From assembly GCA_964234715.1 (NCBI GenBank), contig OZ174287.1: DNA of 64,000 nucleotides; one strand, 5' to 3'. This document shows positions 6,901-63,906 of this stretch, piece by piece (the first letter of the stretch is position 1; each line of letters starts with the position of its first letter). A model generated the notes under the pieces. It saw only the letters and a list, made by a program, of their open reading frames with translations, had not been told where the DNA came from and did not search any database. This DNA is from Podarcis melisellensis (Eukaryota). The position numbers and the translations under genes were made by a program.

Positions 6901-7257
6901 GTCATTCTGTCCGATGCAGTCTGAGATGAACAAGAGGAGACAAACGAGGGTAGAAAATTATTATTGTGGCCTTAAAGGAACCCAACAGCTCTGGGGAGCT
7001 TGTCTAGGTAGAGTATCAGAGAAGAGCATCCCTTGTTCTGACTCTCACAGATGCTCTTTGTAGTACAACGCTCATCCACATACTTCATTAAAGCAGTCAA
7101 AATTCATTCCGAAGACCCCTAATGAACTACAGTGCTTTGAAAAACTGTAATCCAGTAAGCGGCCTCAAAACACAGGGCCTTACACTGGGATTCCCCTCAC
7201 CTCCAACTCTACCTGTGGGTGCAGCGCATGTTGCTGTTGGGGAGGACTGCTCTGCAT
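977..7257 (-). CDS. SRCAP: Snf2-related CREBBP activator protein (H2A.Z-loading remodeller), 5' part; gene continues past the left edge
   Basis: Coding exons with consistent phases: 7257-7201 (alt donor 7213), 6920-6678, 6514-6329, 6013-5873, 5085-4869, 4616-4330, 4016-3929, 3823-3734, 3137-2982, 1937-1684, 1609-1432, 1113-977. Peptides: MQSSP start, HSA domain ([23 protein letters not shown]) and SNF2 ATPase motifs ([36 protein letters not shown]). Confidence 0.97.
2191..2920. mobile_element. Tc1/mariner-pogo (Tigger-like) non-autonomous DNA transposon
   Basis: TIRs CAGTGGTACCTTG / CAAGGTACCACTG, TA on both flanks, internal ~60-bp tandem duplication at 2320-2460. Confidence 0.88.
5598..5656. 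repeat. Compound (TA)/(TG)/(CA) microsatellite
   Basis: Seen directly in the sequence. Confidence 0.9.
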
Positions 7258-8520
7258 TTTAGTTCTCTCTTGCTCTTTGCCTCTCGTCCCAACAGCTTCG
7301 TTTGCGGTTGTAGTGCTGGCTTCCTGCTCCAGTGCATGCTCGGAACCGGCCTCATTCTGGTCAGCCAGCCACTGGGACGAGCCGTCCAGCTCCTGGGTTC
7401 CTTGGCAGCCCAGCCTGCGCTCGGGACTGCCTGTCTCAGAATTATCTAGAGATTCATGAAGAGGAATCAGTCGCATTGTGATCAGAGACAGACTGAAAAG
7501 AACTGAAAGACACCCACTCAAGAACAACCTAAAGGAAGATTTTCAGAGGAAGTGAAATTAAACGTCAAAATGACATTAGCATGCCCTCTGCCTACAATTT
7601 TACTTTCCTTTAACACAAAGGACTAAAGCACTAAAAATTAAAGAAGGAAAGTAATGCACCTTAAAAGCAGCTATTAACTAAAGAGCATAAATGTAAACCA
7701 AACAGTTCCCAGCTGATCAAATCTCATTTCTCACTAGGTTTTTTTCAAAAAAGAAGCTGTGAGTATAAATATGATTTGATTAATGATTACAGTGAAGGGA
7801 GGAGGGGTTCTTTTTTCCTTTTTTGTTGCTGTTGCCAAAATCAGGGCAGCCCCAGAAAAATTTGCTTGGGAGCCGGATCAGGCCCCCCCAAACTGGGGGT
7901 TAGCCTCTCCCAATTTACGATATACAAGAGATCTGGTGGCAGAACCCAGTAGAAAATTAATATATCCAACACAGTAGCTATCAAAAACACAACAGCATTA
8001 GAAAATCTCCGTTGCTAAGTTTGTACACACAAGCAAACATTTTCTGTTACAGAATAAATGTTTGGGTAATGTGAAAAAATGTTTTCTCTCAAAGTTTGCA
8101 TTTAAAACTTTAATATTTAGACATAAAAGATGTAAACCCTGCCTACAAGTAGAGGATTCCCCTATCTTTCTCCACTGGATACATATTCTACTGTTTAGTA
8201 CTAAATGCCTAGACTTTCCAAAAATTTCCAGGGGAGCTATGAACAGATACTGTAAATTTTATTTCATTCCTTTGAGCTGCTTTTTATATCCCTCCATCAT
8301 ATCTCAACAAGCAAATTAAGTTTAGCTGTGGCCAAGCCAGATTCCAGTACATAATAAACTCTGGCCCATCAATATAGATGTTGGTGACAGAAAAAGCATT
8401 TTGAAAAGAAAATAAATCCAACACTGAGCTCAGAAAAACAGCCAAAGATTTAGATTTGCTTGATGTTCCTGCTTAAAACCCTGTTGCCAATTCCCCAATG
8501 GTATTCAGTTTCACCTGTAC

Positions 8521-8594
8521 CTGCGTGAGCTGCGAACTCCTCTTGCTTGTCAGGCTGAACTTCCAGGGTTTCGCTTTCCTGGGGAATACTACAC
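8521..8594 (-). other. SRCAP: SRCAP exon 2 (5'UTR in the canonical form, coding in the predicted long form)
   Basis: Acceptor ttttttttcag|G at 8594; donors CAG|gtacag (8521) and CAG|gtgaaa (8515); open frame RCSIPQESETLEVQPDKQEEFAAHA. Confidence 0.75.
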
Positions 8595-8738
8595 CTGAAA
8601 AAAAATGGAACCGTTAGTCCAGAGAACATTTTGTGTGTGCGCGCGTGTGGTAGATGCACAGCAACCTATTCCTTTAGGTAAGGATCATTCAAACTTGCTC
8701 TTGGGACCCTGAACGACTCTGCCAAAGGGTAGATCAAA

Positions 8739-8872
8739 CCCTGTCTCTCTTTTATTGTTACGCAGACAGCATGGGAATAGCCGGCCCACGGGTTACGGTG
8801 GAGAGTTTTACTGTATGCACCAGCTACCAAATTCAAGCCTATGAAAAGAGGCAGGAACCTGTTTGGGGTGCA
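8739..8872 (-). ncRNA. SNORA30: Box H/ACA snoRNA, SNORA30/SNORA37 family
   Basis: 134 nt, intronic, sense to SRCAP. 5' hairpin closed by TGCACC/GGTGCA and containing ATTTGGTAGCTGGTGC, as in SNORA30 recalled from memory. H box ACAGTA (8814-8809), 3' hairpin CTCTC/GAGAG, ACA box 3 nt from the end (8744-8742). Human SNORA30 is hosted by SRCAP. Confidence 0.85.
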
Positions 8873-9328
8873 GTTTGGTGAACCACTAGAATTATCTCAC
8901 TTTCCCATCCACTTTACAGATTCTGAGTTGTCTAGCAGTCTCCTTTTCACTCACTCCCATGCCTAGGTATCCAGAGCCCAAAATCTTCTCAGTATCTGGG
9001 GCGACCCAGCTAGATGAGTGGAGTATAAATAATAAATTATTTTTATTTTGCTTCCAATGTACCCACCTTTGCTTCAGAAGCGTCAATATTCTGCACGTCA
9101 CCCTCATATCATTATCCCAGGGAAGTTTACTTCCCTTCTTGGCTTCATTCTTTTGAGAGAGATCTACAACCCATTCATCCTGCAAGCTGAGATTTTGCAA
9201 CTCAACTCTATTGCTATAGCATCCTATTAACTCTCTGCTTCTATAGCTCAATTTTGTCCCTAGCTCATAAATAACCCACTATCTCCCAAACCTTTTGTTC
9301 CTTCCCTCTCACTCCACACTTAACCCAG

Positions 9329-12300
9329 TTACCTTGTAATTCTACCTCCCTGGCCTGACCCTGCTGGCTCCATATCCTGCTTCAGCCTCTCAGCCAGCCC
9401 CTGCCCTTCTACTTCCAATCCTGACACAGCCTCACCCTCCACATGCTGTGCCAGCCTCAGCGCCCTCTGTTCAACCTGCCCCAGAATGGAACTAGTCTTA
9501 ACAGAACTCAATGGAATAGTATCAATGGGACTTTCAGCCACCTTCACTCCCTTCACATGCAAACCAGCTGGGCCTTCGCCCCACATTGCCCGCCTCATGG
9601 CATTGTACCTTTTAATTGCAATTCCCATTACCCCATCCCGCCAATCTTTCAACTCTTGCTTTCCTGTTAACAGGCCTGGACTTCGTCTCTCTGCCATAGA
9701 GTCAGGACTGTCTGCTTTTGAGCCATGAACTGTTACAGAGAGTCGAGACACTGTCTGCTTAGATCCCAACACGTCCTTCAGCCAGTGTACGTTGGCTGAG
9801 TGGCTTGTAAGCCCATACACCCTTCTTCCCATCCCAGACACTGGTGGCTCAGGACTTGGTCCTGCTGACTTTACTGCTCCCTGACCTGTCACCATCATGT
9901 TTATTCGTTCTTTTATTCCAGCCCGCAATGGCCCTAAAGAAAGTCCATGCCCGGACCCAAGGCCTGCAGTCCAACCAGAACCTGGTCGTATTGTCGAATA
10001 ATCTTGTGTCAGTGGCCTACCAAGCCATGGCAAGTACATTCCTTCTGGATGTTGCCTTGCTCTGTCATCAACATCCTTGGCCAGTATCTCCAACTCCTTA
10101 ACTATCTGTTCCTGCCTCTGTGGTTCTGCTGGGGTCTGATCAAATCCCTTTCCTGCCTCCTCCATCACAGGAACCTGCTGAAAGCTCTCTATCCTGTTAT
10201 CTGCCTCAGAGAAACATGACATCCCTTCCCGTCCAATTCTGTACCCCATCATAACCACCGGCTCACCTACTTTAACCCTAATTGCACGAGACCTCAATTC
10301 AGCTGATCGTGTCTCCCTCTGATCTAATTCATCCTTTCCCAGTTGCGTACGAGCCTCCTTAATCATTCCCTTTTGCCGAGCCATTGCTGTTAAACTGGTC
10401 ACAATCAACCCTGGAGCCCTGTGCTCCAGCACTCCACGACGGAATCCACATGAGCGTGTTGCCCCTTGATGTGGTACCAGTATTGGCCCTTGCCGTAATC
10501 CTGCCAACCCTGAAATTATTTTCCCCTTCAACTTGCGACGTTCCTCTTGACTTCCTATGGCAGTGCGCTGTGACAAATGTGATGACAGCACTGAGGAACC
10601 TGATTTATTCAATTCAGCCACCTTCAGGCTTGTTTCCACTTGACCTTGGGCCAGGTTCGTATCAGATGCCAACCAGGTGACTCTGGTATCTTCTTCACTT
10701 GGTTTTGCCCTTTGACTCAATATCCCCTCCCTGGAAGGCACGCCTGCCATCTCCTGAGTTGGTCCTCCCAACTGTTCTTCTAATTCTGGGCTCCAAACTA
10801 ATGTCTTCTCCTGAGAGGATACCTTTCTTCCCATAGTACCTTGATGCTGCTCAGTCAACGCAATCTCACCTACACTTGTAACCTCCACTACTGGCCCCTG
10901 AAATGGTTCCACCAGCACCTTAGTATCACTCTGATCCCTGAATAATGCCTCTCTTATTTCTCGAGATTCCTCCCTAGTAACCCTCTCAGTTGAACCCAAC
11001 TGCTTGGCTTCTCCCTGATCAAGTCCTACTTGCTCTTTTGTCTCCCTTTGTTCTGGTTCTGCTAGCTCTCCAACTTTCTCCTGACTAGTTCCTAGTTTCA
11101 CCTCTTCTCCAGGCCCCATCTCCTGACTTTGCACAAGTTCTTCCTCCTGGCCTCCAGTTTCTTCTTGTGATCCAGCTACTCTCACTGGTGCTCCCACCGC
11201 CTCCTTCCTTCCTTCTTCCTGACCCACTGCACTCATCTTTTCTGTTTCCCTCTGAGCTGCTCCTATCACTTGCTCAGCCACATCAAGAGCCGCGTGTATC
11301 ATATCCTCCTTGACAGTCACCTCCTCAGTCTCTACCTGACTTGTCACTACCAAACCCTCCCCCTCAATAAATGCTACATCTCTCTTTGAAGTTGCCACCT
11401 CTGCCTCCCTCTTATCTTCCCCTTCCTCCACTGTGGCTACCATACTGCCAATCTCACCCTGACTTATCCCAGCCAAATCCTCAACTTGCTTTTGATCTTC
11501 TACTGATTCCACATCTTTCTCTGCAGCCACCTCTTCTGCCTGCTTTTCATCTATTCTTGGTGATCCCTGATCCAGTGTTGATGCCATACTTTCTTTTTCG
11601 GTCTTACCCTCAACTTCTTCCTGACTTGCCACCACCAAATGCTCAGCCTTCTCCTCAGCTGCACCTGCCTCTCCCTCAGCAATCACCAACTCTGACCCCC
11701 TCAGATCTTCTTGTAGGACTTCAGCTTTAACTTGATCCATTGATGGTGCCACCTCCTCTGCTTCTCCCCTGCTTGACTTCACCAAGTCTTCAACTTCCCC
11801 CCAACCCTCTGATGATGCCAAATCTCCTTCCACAATCATGCTTTCAGCCTCTCTCTGATCTACTCCAGATACCCTGTCTTCCCTTTCAATTTCCTCACCA
11901 AGTCCCTCCTCACCTGGTCCAACAGTCATCTCCGCCTCCCTCTTACCCAAAACTGGTTCCTCCTCTCCAGTCAACACCTCAATTTCCCCCTGACCTAGTC
12001 CTACCAACTCCTCCTCACCCCTTGCTAATATTGCATCTTCCTCTGCAGTCACTTCCTCTAGCTCTCTCTCATTTACATCTGGCACCTTCTCAGTTTGCTC
12101 ATAGTCAATTGCAGGTGCCACATCCTTTTCCTTTCCAGTGACCTCTAGGATCTCCCCTTGACCCAGTCCTGACAACTCCTCCATTTCTCCATGATTATCT
12201 GTTGATTCGCCTTCTTTGTCACTCTCTCCCACCTCCACCGACTCTGGCATCTTTTCAGCCTCCCCCACTGCCTCATCTTCCCTGACAGTTGCCTCAGCTT

Positions 12301-13030
12301 CCCTCTCTTCCAGTTCCATCAACTTTTCCTGTTCATCTCCCTTTTCAACCCTCTCTCCAGAATCTACATGGTCCTCTTCTACCAAATCCTCTTCTTTCCC
12401 GTGGTCCGGCCCTGCCAACTCCTCAGTCCAATTTCCCCCCATTTCTAGAACCATTTCACCCTCTCCAAGCAGTGTTTCTTCCTCATGAATAAATTCATGA
12501 GTCTCCTGCTGATCCATTCCTTTTCCAGTCTTCCCCTCAGCTTCCCTCTCGTCTGGGCTCCCAAAAACACTGGTTTCCTCCTGATTTGGTTCTCTTGACT
12601 CTTCAACTTCTTCTTTCTCTCTATTACTCTTAAGCTGAAGTTCCTCAAGAATCACTGTCTCCAACTCTTCTGCTTTTCTCAGATATGGTTCAATAATTTC
12701 CTCAGCCTCTTCCCCAGACATTCCTAATGCCACTTCTCTTTTCAGTGCATGCTCAGCCACCCCCCTATCCAGTTTTGCTAAGGGTCCAAATGTATCCTGG
12801 TCTGGTTCCATCAACTCTCCAGTAGTTGGTGCTTCATGTTCTTTTTCAGCCTCCTCTTCTGCCTCTGAGTCTTTAGCCTCTCCCTGTCCCACACCTGTCT
12901 CTGGAAACAATCCAGTTATCTTTCTCTCTGCCTCATTGGGAGGTCCTTCCACTGTGGTCTCTTCATTCACTACAGCCTCCTTTCCCTTCCTATCATCCTG
13001 TGCTTCAGCCTGCCCCTCCTCAGGCTCCAT
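9329..13030 (-). CDS. Giant Glu-rich ORF/exon (1,233 codons) in SRCAP intron 1; candidate alternative first coding exon of SRCAP or stand-alone acidic protein
   Basis: Uninterrupted ORF from ATG 13030 (gtcATGG, in-frame TGA upstream at 13048-13046). Its stop TAA overlaps a donor AAG|GTAACT (exon end 9333, phase 2). Confidence 0.8.
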   Translation of the reverse strand: MEPEEGQAEAQDDRKGKEAVVNEETTVEGPPNEAERKITGLFPETGVGQGEAKDSEAEEEAEKEHEAPTTGELMEPDQDTFGPLAKLDRGVAEHALKREVALGMSGEEAEEIIEPYLRKAEELETVILEELQLKSNREKEEVEESREPNQEETSVFGSPDEREAEGKTGKGMDQQETHEFIHEEETLLGEGEMVLEMGGNWTEELAGPDHGKEEDLVEEDHVDSGERVEKGDEQEKLMELEEREAEATVREDEAVGEAEKMPESVEVGESDKEGESTDNHGEMEELSGLGQGEILEVTGKEKDVAPAIDYEQTEKVPDVNERELEEVTAEEDAILARGEEELVGLGQGEIEVLTGEEEPVLGKREAEMTVGPGEEGLGEEIEREDRVSGVDQREAESMIVEGDLASSEGWGEVEDLVKSSRGEAEEVAPSMDQVKAEVLQEDLRGSELVIAEGEAGAAEEKAEHLVVASQEEVEGKTEKESMASTLDQGSPRIDEKQAEEVAAEKDVESVEDQKQVEDLAGISQGEIGSMVATVEEGEDKREAEVATSKRDVAFIEGEGLVVTSQVETEEVTVKEDMIHAALDVAEQVIGAAQRETEKMSAVGQEEGRKEAVGAPVRVAGSQEETGGQEEELVQSQEMGPGEEVKLGTSQEKVGELAEPEQRETKEQVGLDQGEAKQLGSTERVTREESREIREALFRDQSDTKVLVEPFQGPVVEVTSVGEIALTEQHQGTMGRKVSSQEKTLVWSPELEEQLGGPTQEMAGVPSREGILSQRAKPSEEDTRVTWLASDTNLAQGQVETSLKVAELNKSGSSVLSSHLSQRTAIGSQEERRKLKGKIISGLAGLRQGPILVPHQGATRSCGFRRGVLEHRAPGLIVTSLTAMARQKGMIKEARTQLGKDELDQRETRSAELRSRAIRVKVGEPVVMMGYRIGREGMSCFSEADNRIESFQQVPVMEEAGKGFDQTPAEPQRQEQIVKELEILAKDVDDRARQHPEGMYLPWLGRPLTQDYSTIRPGSGWTAGLGSGHGLSLGPLRAGIKERINMMVTGQGAVKSAGPSPEPPVSGMGRRVYGLTSHSANVHWLKDVLGSKQTVSRLSVTVHGSKADSPDSMAERRSPGLLTGKQELKDWRDGVMGIAIKRYNAMRRAMWGEGPAGLHVKGVKVAESPIDTIPLSSVKTSSILGQVEQRALRLAQHVEGEAVSGLEVEGQGLAERLKQDMEPAGSGQGGRITR

Positions 13031-13399
13031 GACCACATTAACCTTTCACTTATTTCTGGTCTGGTTTCTTGCAAAACTTTGATGGCGCTAAGTAACTGCA
13101 ACCCCTTCCCAACTTTTCAAGTATTATCACTAGCCACCCAAACCCTAGAGCAGTGCAACTGCTCAAGTCCCAGATGATACCCTAATACCCTTTGAACTTG
13201 CCACCATTTCTTAGAACCCTTGCGCCCCGCTAAAAATCAATCCTTGTACTCGCAATCCTGCATTTATTCATTCATTGCACCCTAATCACAAGCGATTCCC
13301 CCTCTGACGCCTAGTTTCTTTCTTTTTCAGCACAAGTTCGATGCCCTTTGATTTCCCCCCACCCTTTAACCCCTTTGTCACCCTTTCCCTCCCACCTTT

Positions 13400-14820
13400 T
13401 CCCTTTGACCCCTTGACCCCGCCCCGGTTTCCCCCAAAACCCTCCCTCCCTCCCTCGCCCTCCCGCCCTAGTCCCCCGAGAATCCCCGCTCGCCCCTCCC
13501 CCACCCGCTGAGAAGTAGGCGGCCGTTGGTTGGTCGGTTTCGCGGCGCGCGAGGAAACGAGGTGACGGGAGGGGCGGGAGGGCGATAGGTGAAGTAATAA
13601 TAGGCCAGCATTGAGAGCGGCCGTTGGCTGGGTAAGCGCGTGCGGCTCCCACATTGGCTCCTTTCTCTTATTTCCCGCCCCACCACTCTCCATTAGTGCG
13701 CCCTCTATAGGTAGGGGAGGGAAATGACCGATGGAAGAGAGGAAGGTTCGGGGGAGGTAAAAGGCCGCGCGCGCGCGCGACCCCCGGCAACCAGGCACAC
13801 GCGCGCGCTCTTATCTGTTTCCTCACTTTTCCCTCCCGACTCGAAGCAGAGACTTGCACCCCTCCAGGGAGGTGGGTGTGAGCGAGAGGAGTAGAGCCCC
13901 GGCCGGTCCGCCATCTTACCTGGGTGGGAGGGGGGAGGAGTGAGGAGGGAGGGGAGGCGCCTCCTGCCCCGCCTCCTCCTGCCGCCGCCTCAGCCCCAGC
14001 GCCGCCGCCTCGGCCGGAGAGAATCCGCCGCCATCCGCGGCCCCCAGGCCTCTCCCGAGCGACTTCTCCCTTTGCGCGGCCTTCGCCGGTGCTCCTCGGC
14101 GCGTCGCCCACCCCTCCCACCCGGATGCTGATCCCTAACCAGGCCCCGCCGAGCCAGACCCGACCCGCCGCGGCAAAATGGCGGCCGCCACCACCAAGCG
14201 CCAGGGCCAGCCCCTCCCTCCTCCCACCGCTCCCTCCACCCGCCGGCCTCGGCGCTTAAGTCTCGCGAGAGCTCGGGTAACGCGAAGGAGGGTGTGCGTG
14301 CGTGGAGAAAGAGAAAAGAAACTCAAACCCAAAGTGTCTCACAGGCGCGTCGCGCGGGAGGACGGCGTCCCGGCGAGAGGCCGCGAGCCAGAAGAATTGC
14401 GGAAGGCGGCGCTCTTCTCCCTCACAATCAGATAGAGCGGGATGCGGGACTGCGAGCCCGCGGGGCGAGGGAAAGGCCATCGCGAGTGAAGGGCATGCTG
14501 GGAAATGGAGTCCTGGGGGATGCTGGGGGTTGGAGTCTCCCTCTCTCTCTCGGACGGAGGGAGGGAGGACTTGATTTGTCTTTCCTCAAAAATTCTTCCA
14601 ATTGTTCGCTGGGCGGGCTGGCGCGACCATTCGAAGGTGCTCAAAACAAGATGCACGTCGCGCTTATGAATGGGAAGAGGCAGCTTTGGCTGGTGAAAAC
14701 ATGCACTTCCCCTAGGACTCGCAGATACTTCGGATGCGACTTTGAAAGTCAGGAAAGTTTCAATGAATATTGTTTACATGGGAGGGTGCTCGCACCGTCG
14801 CGCGAAACGAGGTTGACAAG
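13400..14820 (-). promoter_or_regulatory. CpG-island promoter and non-coding exon 1 of SRCAP
   Basis: Dense CpG; exon 1 donor CAG|GTAAGA at 13920; YY1-type motifs AAAATGGCGG (+, ~14175) and AAGATGGCGG (-, ~13908-13917); CCAAT on - at ~13652. Confidence 0.85.
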
Positions 14821-16397: not shown

Positions 16398-19273
16398 AGG
16401 TCTAGCATGAGCTAAAGCATTAGTTTTCTATCACTGCTGTACGTAGCTCCGCTTGTTGCAGACACAAATGCAAGCTTTGGAGATTGTGTTCTGGAACTAG
16501 ATTCTTCTGTTCTTAAAACAATTCATTAAAATGCCTTCATCTGTGACATGTTTCTTTCAGATAACTTATTTTCATGATAAAAGGGGGGAAAGCCACACAT
16601 TCCACGAATGACATCCAGTTCTGAAGGAACAAATAGAAACATATGTAGAACTCCTGAGGATGTATTATGAGGACAACACCTCAGAAGGTTTTTACCAAGG
16701 GTTTATAAAATCATTTTCACTATACAATAAATTGTCATAGGATGGTATCCAATTTTAGTCACACTTAGAACAGGGTCAGTTAAATCAATAGACCTAATTT
16801 GGGACTAGGTTGAAATCTGTGTTGGGGGTCTAGAAATCTCAGTGGATATTCAACCCGGAAATAATTTTTATCTTTTGTTATCAACACCACTGAGTTTAAA
16901 GAGGATGTACAGTTTAAGATGCAATACTTACTTGGGAGTAAGTCCCATTGAATTAGGACTGTAGTATTAGGAGCTTCGGGATGTTCGCATGGCAATTAAA
17001 AAAACCCGTGGAAACCTCTTGTTTTAACTTTTTTCACAAGTATTACTTTTGAGACCAGAAATTGTGTTATTGGGAATATTTTGGCAACATATTATGAAAG
17101 CATCAATATTTACTAAATAATCTACGTTTTACAGTGCATATTCTGATTACAAAATATGGGAAGAGTCAGTTTGCCTACTCTAAAGGACTGGCTCCCATTT
17201 GACAAAGGTCAGTTAACAGTAAAAATCACTTGCTATAAACTACTACAGGGATTCTGTTTTTTGGACAATTGGGAACCTTTATTGATCTACCAGTTTTTTT
17301 TAAAAAAAAATCATACAAAACAGCTCATCAAGAATATTGGACATTAGAGATCCATCTCAGTCTTCTGGATAATTCTGTACCACCCCAAAGAGATCATGTA
17401 TCTTTGTGTGTTAAAGATATAAAAATAAACCCATTTTAAAAAGCTGGGAGATACAATCCCAAATTAGATTGAAAACTGCAGGATTCCTGATTTCCTAAAA
17501 GCTTTTGCCACCCAATTCAATTTGTGAATTTGTAAACAGTGGAGTATAAAAGGCAAGAGTAAGGACTACTACACTTTTCCAATACTTCATGTTTCAGACC
17601 TGAGCCTCAGTCCAAACTGAACCAGGCATGTAGGTGGGTTTTTTTGTTTGTTTTTATGTATAAAAAATAAAAGTAACCTAGCATATAGCATTTGGCTAGT
17701 TGCACTGATTTCTGCAAAACTGATCCCTGCATCACCTCCTAGAACATGATAAAATCTCTAAATCTGTGGCTTGGCAGTGGAAAGAAATGTTCATTCTTAT
17801 TAAGGTGGTTTTAAAAGAGACTTTGGATTCCATTCATTGTCACTCCAGATTCTTTGCTCCCTCCTGGTTGGAAAGAGACAGTACCAAACATTTAGACTAC
17901 TAGAAAGCAGAAAAGTACAAAGCAAACTTCACAGACAAGAAACTTTCAATTTTACCTACCTCTTCCATCCTATTCTTATCACAGAGATTAAAAAATTGCT
18001 GCAATGGAGAACTGTTGTGAAATACAAGTAGTATAAACCAAATAATATATATGTCACTTATGTAATCATGGCCATTCAGTGTTTAGTGAGAGTTCCCCCT
18101 TTTTTCCAAGGGATTGCAATGAACAATATGTGGCTTTTGAAGTGAGAATGGAGAAAAATAAGGGTGCAACCTGGTAGTAGTCCCAGCCAGGCTCGTTTCT
18201 GGCTGTAATGCCACATCTTTTATCACTTTCCCCCAGATTCTACCAAACAGCCTAGGGCATTAAGATAGGGTTACCAGATGTCCCCATTTCCCAGAGACAC
18301 TCCCCGGATTTACAAATCAGTCCCCATACAAAATCCATTGAAGTTGAAAAGTGTCTCCAGATTCATTGAAAAAAATTGTAACCTTACGTTAAGGAGTTGG
18401 AAGGGATGTGAAGCAAAACTCCAGAATCAGAGATCTCAGGCTGGTGATAGCCAGGGGATTTCCCCAATGGCAACAATTCCACACTGCCAGCTTAGTTTTA
18501 TAATATACCAGGACGGTACAGGATTTGGAGATGTCTGCCCCTTCTGTGTACTTTCTCAACATTAGGAAGTGTTTGTGGTAGAGGTGTCGAAGACTGACAA
18601 CTACTGGTTTGAAAGCGGATTATGGATGGGTCCCTTGCCATAAACAACTAGGCTACGAGCAGCATCAATGGCCTACTTCCTCCTCTACTCATTTGGCATG
18701 ATTTATCATACTAGGGCAACTCATAATAATGAGAATCCAGCCTTTAGGGTAAAAAGAGAAATCCTTAGGGCTTTTAGTGCTGCTTAGAGCAACAATCAAA
18801 TCTAGCTCAGTGTTCAATAGTTGCTAGCAAAGTGAGATCCCACACTTGGGCGGGGAAACCTCTGGGTATGACTGGTAGGGGTTACCTGTAGACCTGCCCA
18901 AATTTACCTTAGTGTCTTGGCATGGCTTATAGCAATGCAAAGTGAGAGGCACCAAAACATACTTTGTCCCAACTTCAAAGGAGTTCCGAAGTCTGTCATG
19001 CAGGTATCTTGGACCATTTGATTTTGCCCAACTCCCTGGCAGGTGTTAGCTTTTAAATGGGCATTTCTTAAGTTGCTCTCTGGGGTGTGGGATCATGCTT
19101 TGGAGAAAGGGCTTTGTCTGCTGGGCTCTAAGTCTAGGACTTGTGCAGGAACGATTAACGGTGGAGGCAGGAAAATGGAAAACCCACTTTCAATTTCAGG
19201 CAGCCACTCGCACTGGTTTATCACTCTGTCCCTAAAGCAAAAGGGTGAGGGAAGAGGGAGATGAAAATGAGGC

Positions 19274-19279
19274 TTTATT
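19274..19279 (-). terminator. Probable FBRS polyadenylation signal
   Basis: AATAAA on - strand ~1.2 kb after the stop, following AU-rich 3'UTR elements near 19900-19960. Confidence 0.6.
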
Positions 19280-20471
19280 TCTCTTCCAAAGCAAAAACAC
19301 TGTTGACGCCAAAGTGTTTCACCTCCTGTAAAACCAGTGTCCTACTTCCATACCGTCACAATTGCTCTGGAGATGTGATGCTTGTGGGGGAATCTTGATC
19401 AAATAGTGTACAGTTTGGTTCCAAGTCTTGTTCCCTTTCATCTTTTAAAGGGCTACAAAAATTATACTCGTCCAGGGTGCCAGCCTCCCTTTCCCAGAGC
19501 TCCAGTTTTAATCGAATAGTGTCCTGCTTGCAAGAGATGGGGCTAAACACCCAGGATTCAAGTGAGAAAGATTGTAGAAGTCTTGTGCTTTCCCCTCCTC
19601 TTCCTCCTGCCCTCCTTCCCGCCAGCCACCCAAAGACACACGCACACACCGAGGAATCCAGAAGCACCAGTTTGGGGTTTAATTAACCAACCTGGGGAAG
19701 AAAAGGGGCACTGGACAAGTGCATTGCACCCTCCTCACTGCACCTTTCCGAAGAGTTACAGAAGGAGGAAAGGGACCGGGAGGTGGAGAGGGTGCGGATA
19801 CAGGTATAGAAAAGAGCAGTACAGTAAAAACAAGGGGAGCCGTGGGGGGAGGACAGGAGAAGAGGGAGAAGTCACTTTTAAAATCACAATCTCAAACCTT
19901 TTATAAATGTACAAAAAAACCTTTTCCCCCACCTGCTTGGGGCAGAATATATAAATATTTACACTGCCTGGCAGGGGGAGGTGCCCCAAGATACAGCCCT
20001 CCCCCTTCCCCTGAAAGCAGCTTTCCCATCAGTCCATTGAGGGAGAAGAACACGCCCCAGAGCCATTTCAGCCCAGCAGGAATACTGGAAGCAGACACAA
20101 AACCTGTTAGGAAGAGGGATCTGGGAAGAAACCGGGACCCAAAACCGGGGCACACCAGCCCCTCGACTCCTGCCCTCCCTCCGCCACAAACACCTCTAAA
20201 ACAGAGACATCACACCCCGTATCTCTTAAGCCCCAACCTGAGCTTGGAAGAGGTTCCAACTATTCATAGCTGAAGGAGGCGAAAGTCCTTCTGGGAGGGG
20301 TGGCTGGGTGCTCCTCAGGTTAAGGCAGCAGGAAGCTGCACTCTTATCCCTGCCTGACAGGAAGGGGATGGGGGGCTCGGTTTCTCTGCCCAGGGCTCAC
20401 GCTGACCCCACCAGTCCACTGGAGACAAGGGAAGCTGCTTGATAGAGGTGCGCACATGTCCCAGAGCACCA

Positions 20472-37011
<16,540 letters not shown>

Positions 37012-54679: not shown

Positions 54680-55900
54680 CGGGCACCGTCAGGCCCCTTT
54701 CTCTTGGGGGTCGCCTCCTAACTATCCCCACCGCTTCAAGATCCGTCCCCTTTAGCTCTCCCGCCGATTCCTCCCTCACTGACCTAAAAGGGCCGGCTCC
54801 AGAGGAGGAGGCGGTGTGGGGAGGAAGAGCCTGCCTCCGATTACCTGTCGGCTCCTCATCCACCCCCACCCCCCGCGCCCGGTGCTCTGCCCTAGGCAGG
54901 ATCAGCACCGCTCCCTGGCGGGAGGAAAGGCAAGGCGAGTAGAGGCGGAGGCTGCTCCTCTTTCCTCCGAGGGAGAGCGGCAGCACCAGGCAGAGGAGGC
55001 GCCGGGTGGACAGTCCCTCCGCGCACCCCTGACAGCCGGGTGAGGTGTGGGGCTGGACGGTGCCCACCTCCGACTCCTCAGCCGCTTCCTCCAGATCCTT
55101 CCGCCCTTCTCCTCCCCACCCCACAAAAAACATCCAACTTCATGGAGGTCCCCCCGCCCCAAATAGCTGCCCCCCACATGGTGGCCTTTTGCTCCTTCCA
55201 CCCCCTCTCGATCCTCCCCACAAGTTGCCCCCTCCCCGCCCCGCAATCCGCCAGGCGCGCCCGACCCGACACCGGCCGGCCACCCCACCCGGGAGCGGCG
55301 CCCCCCTCGCCCGCCCCATCCAGGTCTCACCTCCGCCGCCTCCCTCCCTTCCTCGGGCTTCTCGCCTGCCTCAGGCAAACAAACTGATAAGCACCCGCAT
55401 CTCAATGTGAAAAAAATAAAATAAATAAAACTACTCCGCACGCTCGACCCCGCCTTTACCGCCTCCTCTCTCCAACTCACCAGCTCGCCCTCTTCCTCCT
55501 CCCCTCGCCCTTCTCCAAGCAGCCGCTGGACAGTGCCCGAGCCGTCTCCACATGCAGCCCACCCAATGGCCATGCGTCTTGTTAATGGTCCCAACCAATA
55601 GGCGCGCGGTTTCTTTACCGGCGTCTGGTAGCTACAGCGCCGCCATCGCTGTTCAGGGCAACAACAAAAAAAGTTGGTCGTAGACTTTTTTGAGTTTGTG
55701 TTGCAAAAGGAAGCGGTGCGACCGCCTTCTTCGCTAAAAGGCGTCTGCGCCGTTGAAGTCAGCAGGCCCGCCATCTCAAGAAAGGGCAGGGAATGAGAAG
55801 AAAATAGGAAGGAAAACGTACAGGGCGGTAGCCATTTTGGGTGAGGGCAGAGTTTGGTTGGCGCCGTTTAAGACGCCGCCATTTGAGGGGAAGACCAGAA
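54680..55900 (-). promoter_or_regulatory. CpG-island promoter and non-coding exon 1 of PRR14
   Basis: CpG-rich; donor GAG|GTGAGA at 55331; CCAAT boxes at ~55563 and ~55595; four YY1-like GCCAT cores (~55641, 55770, 55831, 55878). Confidence 0.8.
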
Positions 55901-57780: not shown

Positions 57781-59461
57781 AAACCTGACCCAGGGATCTG
57801 CCCTAGAATAGCATTTTTAGCCAGGTCTAAAGTCTGGATCTTGAAATGTCTGCCTATGTGTTAGAAAGTGGGAGATGGACTCGTGTTTGTTTGTGTGCGT
57901 GCAAGGGATAGATGAAACTGCAGCAGCAGGTTTCCTGAGTAACACTGCAAGCCTAACCCCATTTACCCGAAAGTAAGCACCACTGAATTCCATAGGCCTT
58001 AATTCTGGGTAGGCATGGTTAGGAGACTACGTACTGCAAACCCCACGAAAACCCTTAACACTGTTTTTCTCTTCATATGGATGCAGCCTACATATTTCTT
58101 AAACCAGGAGCTTCTTGGTTCTTGTAGATATCACACTGTCTTCCTGTGCATTTTTTCTTCCCAAGATGTTTTTCAGAGGGATTCCTCATCTTGCAGCGCT
58201 TAACCCAGGGTGGGGAAACCTGTGTCCTGCCAGATGTTATTGGACTCTGATCAGCCCAGCCAAGATGGCCAATGGTCAAGGATAGTGGATGTTGTGGTGC
58301 AGTAGCATGTGGCGGGCCAAAAGCTTCTCCATTCCTGCCTTATTCTGCCTCACACTACCTAAGAGTCAGAGAAGAGTCTGGGCACAAGCAGAACCATGGT
58401 GGAGAGTGGGTGCAAAATTGTGCCCGGGTTGACACCTGCCTCCCCCCACCCAGCCACTGAATGTGTGTGGATTAGGTTCTGTTTCAAAACCAAGTGCTTA
58501 ATTTGGTGATCAAGCCTCTTTTCTGTCTGCAGCAGATGGAGCAAATTCTGCCTGGATTCTGTCTCTCCCTGCAGAGAGCAAGAACAAAGTGGAAAACCCA
58601 CAGGAAGATGGTGCACAGCCATGTCCCATTTCCTCAAGTAGCTCCAGCGGGAGTGGAAATAAGAAAGGAGGCTCTGCGAAAGACCAGCCGACTTTTTGTA
58701 AAGGGGACTTGAATGACCCTATGTGGGCCTTGTGTGGCAAAACAAAATCCTACAAATGCCCCGACTGCGGGAAAAATTACCGCAGGAGCACAGACCTCTT
58801 GAGGCACCAGAGGACCCACACGGGAGAAAGGCCTTATCTGTGCCTGGACTGTGGGAAGAGCTTCAGTCGGAGTTCAATCCTCCTGGAGCACCAGAGAATC
58901 CATACAGGTGAGAAGCCATACAAATGCAGCCACTGTGGGCAAGGATTTAGCCAGAGCTCCAACTGTAAGCAGCATGAGAGGACTCATGGGAAGGAGAAAA
59001 GGAGCGACCCAATACACTGGGGATCAACTTGGCAAAGGACAGAGGTTCAGAGGGGTGGGCCTAAAAGCCTGAAAAGAATTGATGAAGGTGCAAGAGCTGA
59101 GCTTGGACTTGGATCTCAGTCTCCAGGGGGAAGTTCCTCGTGGAGCTCAAAGATGGTGATGAAGTATCAGAAAAGCCATAGGATGGAGAAGCCCTACAGG
59201 TGCCCTGAGTGCGGGAAATGCTTTGCACGCAGCACAGATTTCATCCGGCACCACATTACCCACACAGGAGAAAAGCCCTACACGTGTGTGAAATGTGGCA
59301 AGAGTTTTACGCGCAGCTCAGTCCTCATTGAGCACCAGCGAATCCACACGGGAGAGAGGCCCTACAAGTGCCGGCTGTGCGGAAAGGGCTTCAGTCAGAA
59401 CTCTAACCGTAACCAGCACGAGACAATCCATCAGGCTAAGAAATCTCCTGACACTTCCTGA
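57602..59461 (+). CDS. C2H2 zinc-finger protein with six fingers in two triplets; no recognisable KRAB or SCAN
   Basis: Exon 1 57602-57728 (ATGGCGG in a CpG island, CAG|GTGAGC, phase 1) joins in frame to acceptors at 58533/58536 or 58575; stop 59459-59461. Canonical CxxC...HxxxH fingers with TGEKPY/TGERPY linkers. Confidence 0.88.
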
Positions 59462-62199: not shown

Positions 62200-63250
62200 T
62201 GACTAGCCTGCTGATCTCCCTCCGGGCAGTGGAGTGTCCCGCTGTCCTTGCCCTCAGGCAGCGAAATGTCTTGGGCCGACCTTTGCTCCCAGGCATGTTC
62301 CCATGCACTACTCCCGTGTTAACGGTGCACCTTCCGGATTCGAACGGACGAGAGGCGATCGTTACGCTGCACATTCTCGGAAGCAGCATTCTCTCCCCGC
62401 CTGCCCCGTCCCTATTCCACGGCGCGGTTTCTGCAAGAGCTCGGTTGCCACGAGGAAACACGTTCCTCCGGGGTGGCCTCTAGTAGAAGCTCCGGATCAG
62501 AGGCTCCGAGCTTCCCTCTCTTCCTCGACGCCCCCGCCCCTATTTCAAAACCCGAATACTCGTCGCTTGCGGGGCTGGAGAAGGGTGGGAGGGAGGGAGG
62601 AGGACTCCTGGGTCCGCCCCCTACTCGCGTCTGGCAGGAACAGGCGCCGCTGCTGCAGTTGCCACTCTCCCTGTCTTGCAGACCTCTCCACCAATGAGCG
62701 AGAACGAGGGAAGGCAACGTTGGCGAATCTGCGAGGCGCACCGCCCCTCCGCCACCCTCCTCTCGACGTCTAACATTCTCCCCGTCGTCGTCCCCCCCCG
62801 GCCCTCGGAGCTCCCCCTCCCCACTCAGCAGGGTCTCTTCTCGGGGAGGGAAGAGGCGCAAAAGCGCAGCCGGAGCCGATTCCGCCGCCCATCTCGAGGC
62901 GCTTGCCAAAGGGCGAGGAGCCTCCGGATCCCGTTGATCGGCTCTGCTAGCCACCTCTGCGCCCTCCTCCGCATCATCATCATCTTCATCATCACCCTCG
63001 GCAGCCCCACCATTCCTCCCCTGCTCCAGAGAGGCCCGGGTGAGTGGGGAGCGGAGCCAGCCTGGGTCGCAGGAAGCAGTCACTCCTTGGCTCAACTTCC
63101 TTCCCGGACTTGGTACTGGCCCCGGGTGGGGAATCCGGCTCCCCTTCCTTACCCAGCCCCTTATCCTGCTGCCAGCTACCCTAACTCTCCATAGGGACGT
63201 GGCGGAGAAAAAAGGGTGTCTACCACGTGGGTTGCCAGAAGCAGCTGTTG
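62200..63250 (+). promoter_or_regulatory. CpG island with probable 5' exon of the next gene
   Basis: CpG-rich, GC boxes at ~62533 and ~62613, strong donor CGG|GTGAGT at 63039. Confidence 0.65.
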
Positions 63251-63906
63251 CTTGGAATAGAGAGGTGTGTGCATCACAACACAACCCCCCCCCCCTTGGA
63301 TTTCTAAGACGTAATTAGGCTAAACTTACGGAGCTAGTGATATTAGCGAGCAGACACACGCCAAGACTGAGAGACAAAAGAGGTAAGTTTTAAGAGCTCC
63401 AGACTCCTGGGGGTTGCGGGGAAGGGTGGGTCTTATTTGAGGCCATGGCCTGCACAGGGATCCCTCTGCAGTTGTGATACCTACACATTAGTGCTGTGTG
63501 CTTCTGAGCTTGTGAAGGGTGCATAAATAAGCCAGTCGTTCTCTATGAAGACAGCACTTTGCATCAGGGATTAGTGACAGGATTTCCAGACAGACTTGAG
63601 TCATATCATGGCCTCATCCATCTTCCCATACTATATTCAAACCAAGTGGACTCATCCATGTTCATTGGGGGCTGGGGGCAATAGGAAAATAGATCTAAAT
63701 ATCTCCTGAATCTAAGCTAGGTGGCTGGCCTCACAGGATAGTTGTGAGTCAAAAAAGCTGCACTGACTTGTAGGGGGTTTGATGGTCTACAAATAAGAGT
63801 TGTTTAAAGAGGACTTAATTTTCTAATAACTATGCTTAGGGTGGAGAGCCTTGGTCACTTACCTTTGTTTCTCCCTCAAAAGCCACTCACTTCCGCACTT
63901 AAATTA

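Follow-up and report, generated by a model that had tools for sequence, protein, structure and literature searches.

Introduction

In the gene GNAS, XL-alpha-s is produced from a large alternative first exon that is spliced in frame to the shared exons of the gene, and both the junction and the protein have been documented by experiment. A locus of similar outline is found in the lizard Podarcis melisellensis, in a stretch of 64,000 nucleotides (nt) from contig OZ174287.1 (assembly GCA_964234715.1), here called the window, where a long open reading frame (ORF) lies on the strand of SRCAP, between non-coding exon 1 and exon 2 of that gene. As in GNAS, the frame is long and on the strand of its host, it has its own start upstream of the canonical one, and it closes at a splice donor in phase with the next shared exon. 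A preliminary description of the window proposed on these grounds a fused product, XL-SRCAP, in which the ORF would be read through SRCAP exon 2 and the leader of exon 3 into the canonical SRCAP protein.

Having compared the locus with its counterparts in other lizards and in snakes, we consider it probable that the ORF is instead the single coding exon of an independent gene, whose main product would be a stand-alone protein of about 1,000–1,360 amino acids.

Results

A single-exon reading frame between SRCAP exons 1 and 2

The ORF starts on the minus strand with the ATG at 13030–13028, in the context GTC ATG G, 18 nt downstream of an in-frame TGA (13048–13046). From 13030 to 9333 (3,698 nt, in a window that contains zero N), its frame holds no stop over 1,232 codons, while the other two sense frames hold 88 and 94; the sense strand is purine-rich, and its base composition predicts about one stop every 16 codons. 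The 3′ end of the ORF reads ACA AG/GTAACT, where the slash marks a hypothetical exon end at 9333, in phase 2, so that the stop codon TAA (9331–9329) occupies donor positions +2 to +4. Neither tandem repeats within the ORF nor a second copy of it in the window, by blastn or tblastn, were detected, and the repeat-family origin that the preliminary description had allowed for was thus not borne out in the window (the coordinates of all features are given in Table 1).

Relatives, synteny and annotation in squamates

Searched exhaustively, a set of 1.84 billion representative proteins returned homologues exclusively from squamates, to which word-based searches added more: Podarcis lilfordi, P. muralis, Zootoca vivipara, Candoia aspera, Pseudonaja textilis, Notechis scutatus, Thamnophis elegans, Micrurus lemniscatus (a UniProt entry), Anolis sagrei and Phrynocephalus forsythii, plus two more contigs. 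The exact protein sequence of the window was absent from this collection; its identity to the homologues was 98% in P. lilfordi, 93% in P. muralis and 85% in Zootoca vivipara. A scan of metagenome contigs with a profile of the C-terminal region found zero relatives. On present evidence the gene would therefore be restricted to squamates (lacertids, iguanians and snakes), a limit that is drawn from annotated proteins.

The annotated homologues are stand-alone proteins of 1,000–1,363 amino acids, with short isoforms of 882 and 910. Lacertid and snake proteins have the N-terminus MEPEEG in common, and the purine at −3 and the G at +4 of the start are kept in lizards and snakes. At the other end, full-length lacertid and snake products share one terminal codon; the two short isoforms, the protein of Anolis sagrei and the Phrynocephalus model with its frameshift end elsewhere. 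The TAA stands at the identical position in ten of ten sequences. Wherever the upstream gene is annotated (Zootoca, P. muralis, P. lilfordi, Candoia, Pseudonaja and Thamnophis), the gene order is FBRS, ORF, SRCAP; in Phrynocephalus the ORF is followed by SRCAP. The RefSeq genes LOC114583697 (P. muralis), LOC132593046 (Zootoca vivipara) and LOC134495752 (Candoia aspera) are direct orthologues by length class, synteny, start and stop. The names given to orthologues, such as ‘titin homolog’, ‘A-kinase anchor protein 12-like’ and ‘retinitis pigmentosa 1-like 1’, look like artefacts of glutamate-rich low-complexity sequence.

These annotations bear directly on the proposed fusion, which found no support in them: every available model of the ORF is stand-alone, and the longest SRCAP product beside it in six genomes is 3,479, 3,478, 3,355, 3,421, 3,320 or 3,323 amino acids long, not about 4,600. 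No annotation that joins the ORF to SRCAP was present in seven genomes, in protein records and coding ranges and with no search aimed at fused proteins of about 4,600 amino acids; the annotators did resolve small internal splice variants of the ORF, yet no join to SRCAP. A search for short protein fragments (88–280 amino acids) spanning the ORF–SRCAP junction was also blank. The statement of the preliminary description that no such isoform had been described has to be amended, as the ORF itself is already in RefSeq as an uncharacterised LOC gene, although no paper on the ORF gene or on an XL isoform of SRCAP was found in the literature.

RefSeq holds five isoform records for Pseudonaja textilis and three for Notechis scutatus. 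Several of these drop 10–30 codons within the acidic region, in the manner of exitrons, and in both species a short form ends in ...SLRADV.

Selection on the reading frame

All nine indels that separate the ORF from those of P. muralis and Zootoca are multiples of three (3 to 108 nt), while the flanks hold many indels of other lengths. At 213 ORF positions the window differs from Zootoca; as about 4–5% of random substitutions in the ORF sequence create stops, about nine stop-creating substitutions would be expected, and none was seen. Among lacertids, the ratio of nonsynonymous to synonymous divergence (dN/dS) of the ORF was 0.67–0.99, ranging from 0.35 to 1.2 by block of 200 codons, which denotes weak amino acid constraint, and the nucleotide divergence of the ORF was near that of introns. 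Between lizards and snakes, the C-terminal 400 codons gave a dS of about 0.9–1.1, a dN of about 0.31–0.36 and a dN/dS of 0.32–0.36, with differences distributed 115:98:164 over the three codon positions, the usual third-position excess. Frame-preserving indels and a dN/dS below 1, both named in the preliminary description as properties to test for, were thus found in the ORF, the latter most clearly in its C-terminal region.

The disrupting stops or frameshifts in relatives that the same description had envisaged were, with one exception, not encountered. The ORF is intact in the three Podarcis species, Zootoca, Candoia, Pseudonaja, Thamnophis and one snake contig. The Phrynocephalus forsythii assembly carries a 1-nt frameshift about 85 codons before the ORF stop (L005, about 12990–13250), after which the conserved frame runs on to the usual TAA; it may be an assembly error, or it may reflect relaxed constraint or real decay. 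Because of this shift, the annotated Phrynocephalus protein of 1,028 amino acids has a spurious tail. Taken together, the alignments show that the ORF is real coding sequence, with a frame held open by selection.

A conserved splice-donor motif contains the stop codon

The 10-mer AAG/GTAACTG at the end of the ORF is unchanged in seven of eight sequences, three from lizards (the window, Zootoca and an iguanian-like contig) and four from snakes (Candoia, Pseudonaja, Thamnophis and one more contig), while merely three of 45 flanking columns are invariant across the same sequences. In Phrynocephalus the site is CAG/ATAACGT, read as AGA TAA CGT, so that the arginine and the stop are kept and the GT is lost. 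The terminal residue of the Micrurus protein is methionine, not arginine, which implies a changed base at position −1 of the donor. The proposal that the ORF ends in a conserved splice-donor consensus, compatible in phase with open ‘untranslated’ exons in every species examined, therefore stands as a description of the sequence.

The linking exons are conserved as nucleotides

The fusion path was assessed exon by exon, with the two junction codons read by eye. Its coordinates and arithmetic, when rechecked, agreed with those of the preliminary description: 3,698 + 74 + 188 = 3,960 nt, or 1,320 codons. We then considered whether the evolution of the two linking segments, SRCAP exon 2 and the exon 3 leader, agrees with this path. 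Exon 2 has no indels, and in seven of seven sequences the required frame and one other are open; of its 18 variable columns, six fall at each codon position (6:6:6), and the ratio of nonsynonymous to synonymous differences per site (pN/pS) was 0.83. The leader, likewise without indels, is 90–92% identical between lacertids and boa or agamid; its variable sites fall about 8:5:7 over codon positions (counted by eye from the alignment), and its pN/pS was 0.61 in the frame of the proposed fusion and 0.40 in the +1 frame, the lowest of the three. The coding-type evolution anticipated for exons 2 and 3 was, in short, not observed.

In both linking segments two of the three frames are open, and the required one is stop-free in every species examined. 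Apparent synonymous divergence there is about 0.10–0.14 (about 0.10 for pS in the leader), against a dS of about 1 in the ORF. Since synonymous sites are about tenfold more conserved than in the ORF, the constraint lies on the nucleotide sequence itself, and by this pattern exon 2 and the leader behave as non-coding sequence under nucleotide constraint rather than as codons. It had been argued that the phase matches and the open codons of the ‘untranslated’ exons were unlikely by chance; the required frame is indeed open, but shuffled sequences gave 0.34 × 0.10 = 0.034, and with two of three frames open this is mild evidence. The second of the two tandem donors described for exon 2, 6 nt apart, is present in the window but is not conserved in snakes.

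The leader is more conserved than the first codons past the canonical SRCAP ATG. It also contains two conserved out-of-frame ATGs, at 7355–7353 and 7337–7335 (minus strand), from which the +1 frame is open past the SRCAP ATG as far as exon 3 extends. This +1 frame may serve as an upstream ORF, overlapping the SRCAP start, by which translation of SRCAP is regulated.

A second donor and a candidate polyadenylation signal past the stop

A second donor, with exon end at 9067, closes a short segment here called exon 1b. The annotated SRCAP proteins of P. muralis and P. lilfordi (3,479 and 3,478 amino acids) start at the equivalent of ATG 9107 (L002:13921 and L003:13924 in the respective loci). In these two annotations and that of Candoia, the SRCAP coding range begins 167–222 nt past the ORF stop, and the corresponding models (3,479, 3,478 and 3,421 amino acids) read exon 2 and the leader in the frame of the proposed fusion. 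We take these extended models to be the outcome of a longest-ORF rule applied to an open leader; as they suggest, some transcripts may extend from immediately past the ORF into exon 2.

The 9067-type donor stands out as an island of conservation in lacertids, the two iguanian-like sequences, Candoia and a single snake contig. Its GTGGGT is deleted in Pseudonaja (L008, about 13500–13530) and Thamnophis (L009, about 13190–13215). Zootoca lacks the ATG at 9107, and in Candoia it is shifted. The distance from the ORF stop to this donor varies between species from 213 to 266 nt and not by multiples of three; because its length varies out of frame, the stretch past the stop is non-coding. An N-terminal extension of SRCAP from ATG 9107 was considered as a conserved feature and rejected, in view of the non-conserved ATG, the out-of-frame length changes and the loss of the donor in Pseudonaja and Thamnophis.

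A polyadenylation-type hexamer occurs at a conserved place 230–285 nt past the stop: lacertids have AATAAA, Candoia and Pseudonaja share ATTAAA, and in Thamnophis and the snake contig the motif is GATAAA.

A candidate promoter downstream of SRCAP exon 1

SRCAP exon 1 is about 90% identical between lacertids and boa and agamid. A CCAAT box and a TATA-like motif lie 260–320 nt downstream of its donor, with about 570 nt between them and the ORF start; both motifs are kept in the window, Zootoca, Candoia and Phrynocephalus, in surroundings that vary. This region may be a second promoter, belonging to the ORF exon. Upstream of the ORF ATG no conserved acceptor was found. Together with the placement of the CCAAT and TATA-like motifs past the donor of exon 1, this gives the ORF exon the appearance of a first exon. 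More conserved blocks, of GC-box and CCAAC type, reach up to 13850.

An acidic, fast-evolving region and a conserved basic region

The encoded protein falls into two parts of opposite charge. The N-terminal part carries degenerate L-x-G-L-G-Q-G-E motifs, and in alignment A1 it is poorly conserved, with large indels and great differences in length between species. The N-terminal two thirds of the protein are probably disordered as well as fast-evolving and indel-prone. The C-terminal part has a mean column identity of 66% over seven sequences (alignment A2), with invariant motifs that include KGKIIxGLAGLRQGPI, MGYRIGRE, WLGRP and KDWRDGVMG. The ‘mostly acidic’ N-terminal extension of the preliminary description is hence correct for residues 1–780 (isoelectric point, pI, of 4.2), but residues 781–1233 have a pI of 9.8.

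Pfam gave no match to the complete ORF or to the seven C-terminal sequences, the best match of a profile search of PDB was irrelevant (E = 0.03), and ESM Atlas gave zero usable matches. AlphaFold2 modelled the conserved C-terminal region with a few helices and a mean predicted local distance difference test score of 33.6; the input was a seven-row alignment, hence this low value is no proof of disorder. Our best guess, held weakly and judged from composition alone, is that the stand-alone protein would act as a disordered acidic binder of basic partners.

Other features of the window

The intron upstream of SRCAP exon 2 contains a candidate small nucleolar RNA (snoRNA), which matched the Rfam model RF00415 (SNORA30/SNORA37) over the full model length with a score of 31.9 bits (E = 0.004), short of the family's gathering score of 90. 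Across lacertids, snakes and an agamid, conservation of the snoRNA-like block is about 90%. Four papers on human and cattle mention both SNORA30 and SRCAP. Further upstream of the ORF, a region at about 16400–23400 (minus strand) is collinear with the 3′ part of the Auts2-family (FBRS-like) gene that is annotated upstream of the ORF in relatives. An ORF at 58589–59458 (plus strand) encodes C2H2 zinc fingers (Pfam zf-C2H2, E = 2e-34); two ORFs of 290 amino acids, at 54902–55774 and 62412–63284 (both minus strand), had no Pfam match; related zinc-finger copies read in antisense may account for them. This arrangement suggests a tandem cluster of zinc-finger genes upstream of FBRS.

Table 1 Positions of the features discussed, counted from the first letter of the window; a slash marks the exon/intron boundary.
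Feature	Position	Strand	Details
SRCAP non-coding exon 1	13920–14180	−	CpG island, GC 0.65–0.70; donor CCCAG/GTAAG, exon end 13920; 5′ end approximate
Candidate promoter	13595–13657	−	CCAAT 13657–13653 and TATA-like TATTATTA 13602–13595, about 50 nt apart
Single-exon ORF	9332–13030	−	1,233 codons, ATG 13030 to AGG 9334–9332, then TAA 9331–9329
Acidic N-terminal region	10691–13030	−	residues 1–780; pI 4.2; 29% aspartate plus glutamate
Basic C-terminal region	9332–10567	−	residues 822–1233; pI 9.9; about 410 amino acids
Splice-donor consensus AAG/GTAACTG	9326–9335	−	8 of 9 consensus positions; contains the ORF stop
Exon 1b segment	9067–9107	−	ATG 9107; donor CAAAG/GTGGGT, exon end 9067, phase 2 relative to ATG 9107
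Candidate polyadenylation signal AATAAA	9042–9047	−	284 nt past the ORF stop
SNORA30-like H/ACA snoRNA candidate	8739–8874	−	intron upstream of SRCAP exon 2; Rfam RF00415
SRCAP exon 2	8521–8594	−	74 nt in all species examined; acceptor TTTTTTTTCAG/G, donor CAG/GTACAG
Exon 3 leader	7258–7445	−	188 nt in all species examined; directly upstream of the canonical ATG 7257 (MQSSP)

Discussion

We favour an independent gene because of the absence of stops in the ORF, the indels in multiples of three, purifying selection, synteny, stand-alone annotation, the non-coding 3′ flank, linking exons without a codon signature, and the loss of the donor GT in Phrynocephalus. In such a gene, transcription would start from the CCAAT/TATA-like promoter inside SRCAP intron 1, and the stand-alone messenger RNA (mRNA) would end at the A-rich polyadenylation signal about 230–285 nt past the stop. 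Two U1-type donors, the one overlapping the stop and the one at 9067, would compete with polyadenylation, as a result of which some transcripts would continue into SRCAP exon 2; a fusion protein, if any, would be a minor by-product. Several points weigh against an independent gene with a stand-alone product. Its promoter and its polyadenylation site are read from motifs only. The phase match and the open linking exons fit a fusion, with a combined chance of roughly 0.03 × 1/3, the donor match excluded. The invariant 10-mer, with its A at −3 and the CTG after the stop, goes beyond what coding for arginine and a stop would need, and is most simply read as a functional U1-binding site, that is, a 5′ splice site. 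An mRNA spliced at 9067 would have the ORF stop far upstream of exon junctions, and nonsense-mediated decay should destabilise it. Lastly, annotation pipelines may split or filter rare or tissue-specific junctions.

Some of these points are what a locus with two outputs would lead one to expect, in which the stand-alone protein is made alongside a selected XL-SRCAP isoform that uses the 9333/9332 donor and gains about 1,320 N-terminal residues. This donor matches eight of nine consensus positions, and its 10-mer is invariant from lacertids to snakes despite a dS of about 1 and varying flanks; the phase is compatible, exon 2 and the leader are free of stops in the required frame throughout, and neither of these two segments has any indel. 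Moreover, colubroids have lost the 9067-type donor and retain the donor at the ORF end, and with no conserved acceptor upstream of its start the ORF exon behaves as a first exon. Yet no fused product appears in seven annotated genomes in which splice variants within the ORF were finely resolved, and short protein fragments spanning the junction were not found. The linking exons, with a pN/pS of 0.6–0.8 and an even spread over codon positions, show constraint at the level of nucleotides, and two of their three frames are open anyway; the GT is lost in Phrynocephalus, and the methionine end in Micrurus implies a changed −1 base. We therefore judge two outputs to be possible but rather unlikely. 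The stop codon built into a conserved 5′ splice site would then act as a switch, unspliced transcripts yielding the stand-alone acidic protein and spliced ones a 1,320-residue extension of SRCAP, with the choice set by competition between U1 and polyadenylation, an idea that we put forward tentatively.

The ORF exon might also be mainly a long alternative 5′ leader of SRCAP, spliced at 9067, in which a giant upstream cistron tunes SRCAP output through translation or decay and the protein is secondary. The SRCAP coding ranges of P. muralis, P. lilfordi and Candoia, which begin in the segment ending at the 9067-type donor, suggest joining to exon 2, and that donor is conserved in most lineages. 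However, the C-terminal 410 amino acids are under purifying selection at the amino acid level, hence the protein matters; in Pseudonaja and Thamnophis the donor is deleted and the ORF intact, and the in-frame ATG of the segment is not conserved, being absent in Zootoca. All this makes a primary role as leader improbable. Least credible of all is a chance or decaying open frame, derived from purine-rich sequence, a repeat or a young pseudogene and giving no product. A purine-rich sense strand, a lacertid dN/dS of 0.67–0.99 and an ORF divergence close to that of introns are what it would predict, but a stop would be expected about every 16 codons, as the 88 and 94 stops of the other frames illustrate, the indels keep the frame, and an intact, syntenic, unrepeated ORF is found in lizards and snakes with a dN/dS of 0.33. 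Stop counts, frame-preserving indels, lizard–snake dN/dS and the orthologues lead us to reject it for practical purposes.

An old, conserved and unstudied gene of lizards and snakes is thereby placed within the 5′ end of the gene for a central chromatin remodeller, under database names that mislead. A stop codon inside a 10-nt donor motif, unchanged since the divergence of lizards and snakes, is a concrete and testable puzzle. If the donor is used, squamates would have a giant SRCAP isoform with a built-in acidic, possibly histone-binding domain, which would bear on the regulation of H2A.Z exchange, and the locus would offer a clear-cut case of switching between a stop codon and a splice site. 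If it is not used, the locus would illustrate how an open ‘untranslated’ frame and a phase match can arise in nucleotide-constrained leaders without coding function.

Unlike GNAS XL-alpha-s, the squamate ORF is known from sequence, its stop sits in the donor, relatives annotate it as stand-alone, and the exons that would link it to its host lack coding-type evolution. It also resembles same-strand nested or upstream genes in which splicing and polyadenylation compete, for it lies between host exons 1 and 2, it has donors directly upstream of a polyadenylation-type signal, and the coding range of the host is annotated to begin right past the stop of the nested gene. Compared with such nested and read-through genes, polyadenylation and donor use are inferred here, and the donor overlapping the stop is unusually conserved for a mere by-product. 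Finally, squamate-only homologues, the lack of Pfam and PDB matches, a low-confidence structural model and a fast-evolving acidic part recall orphan genes with disordered proteins. In contrast to young orphans, the squamate gene is old, and since it is shared across lacertids, iguanians and snakes with a conserved region of 410 amino acids under purifying selection, it is not a young de novo gene.

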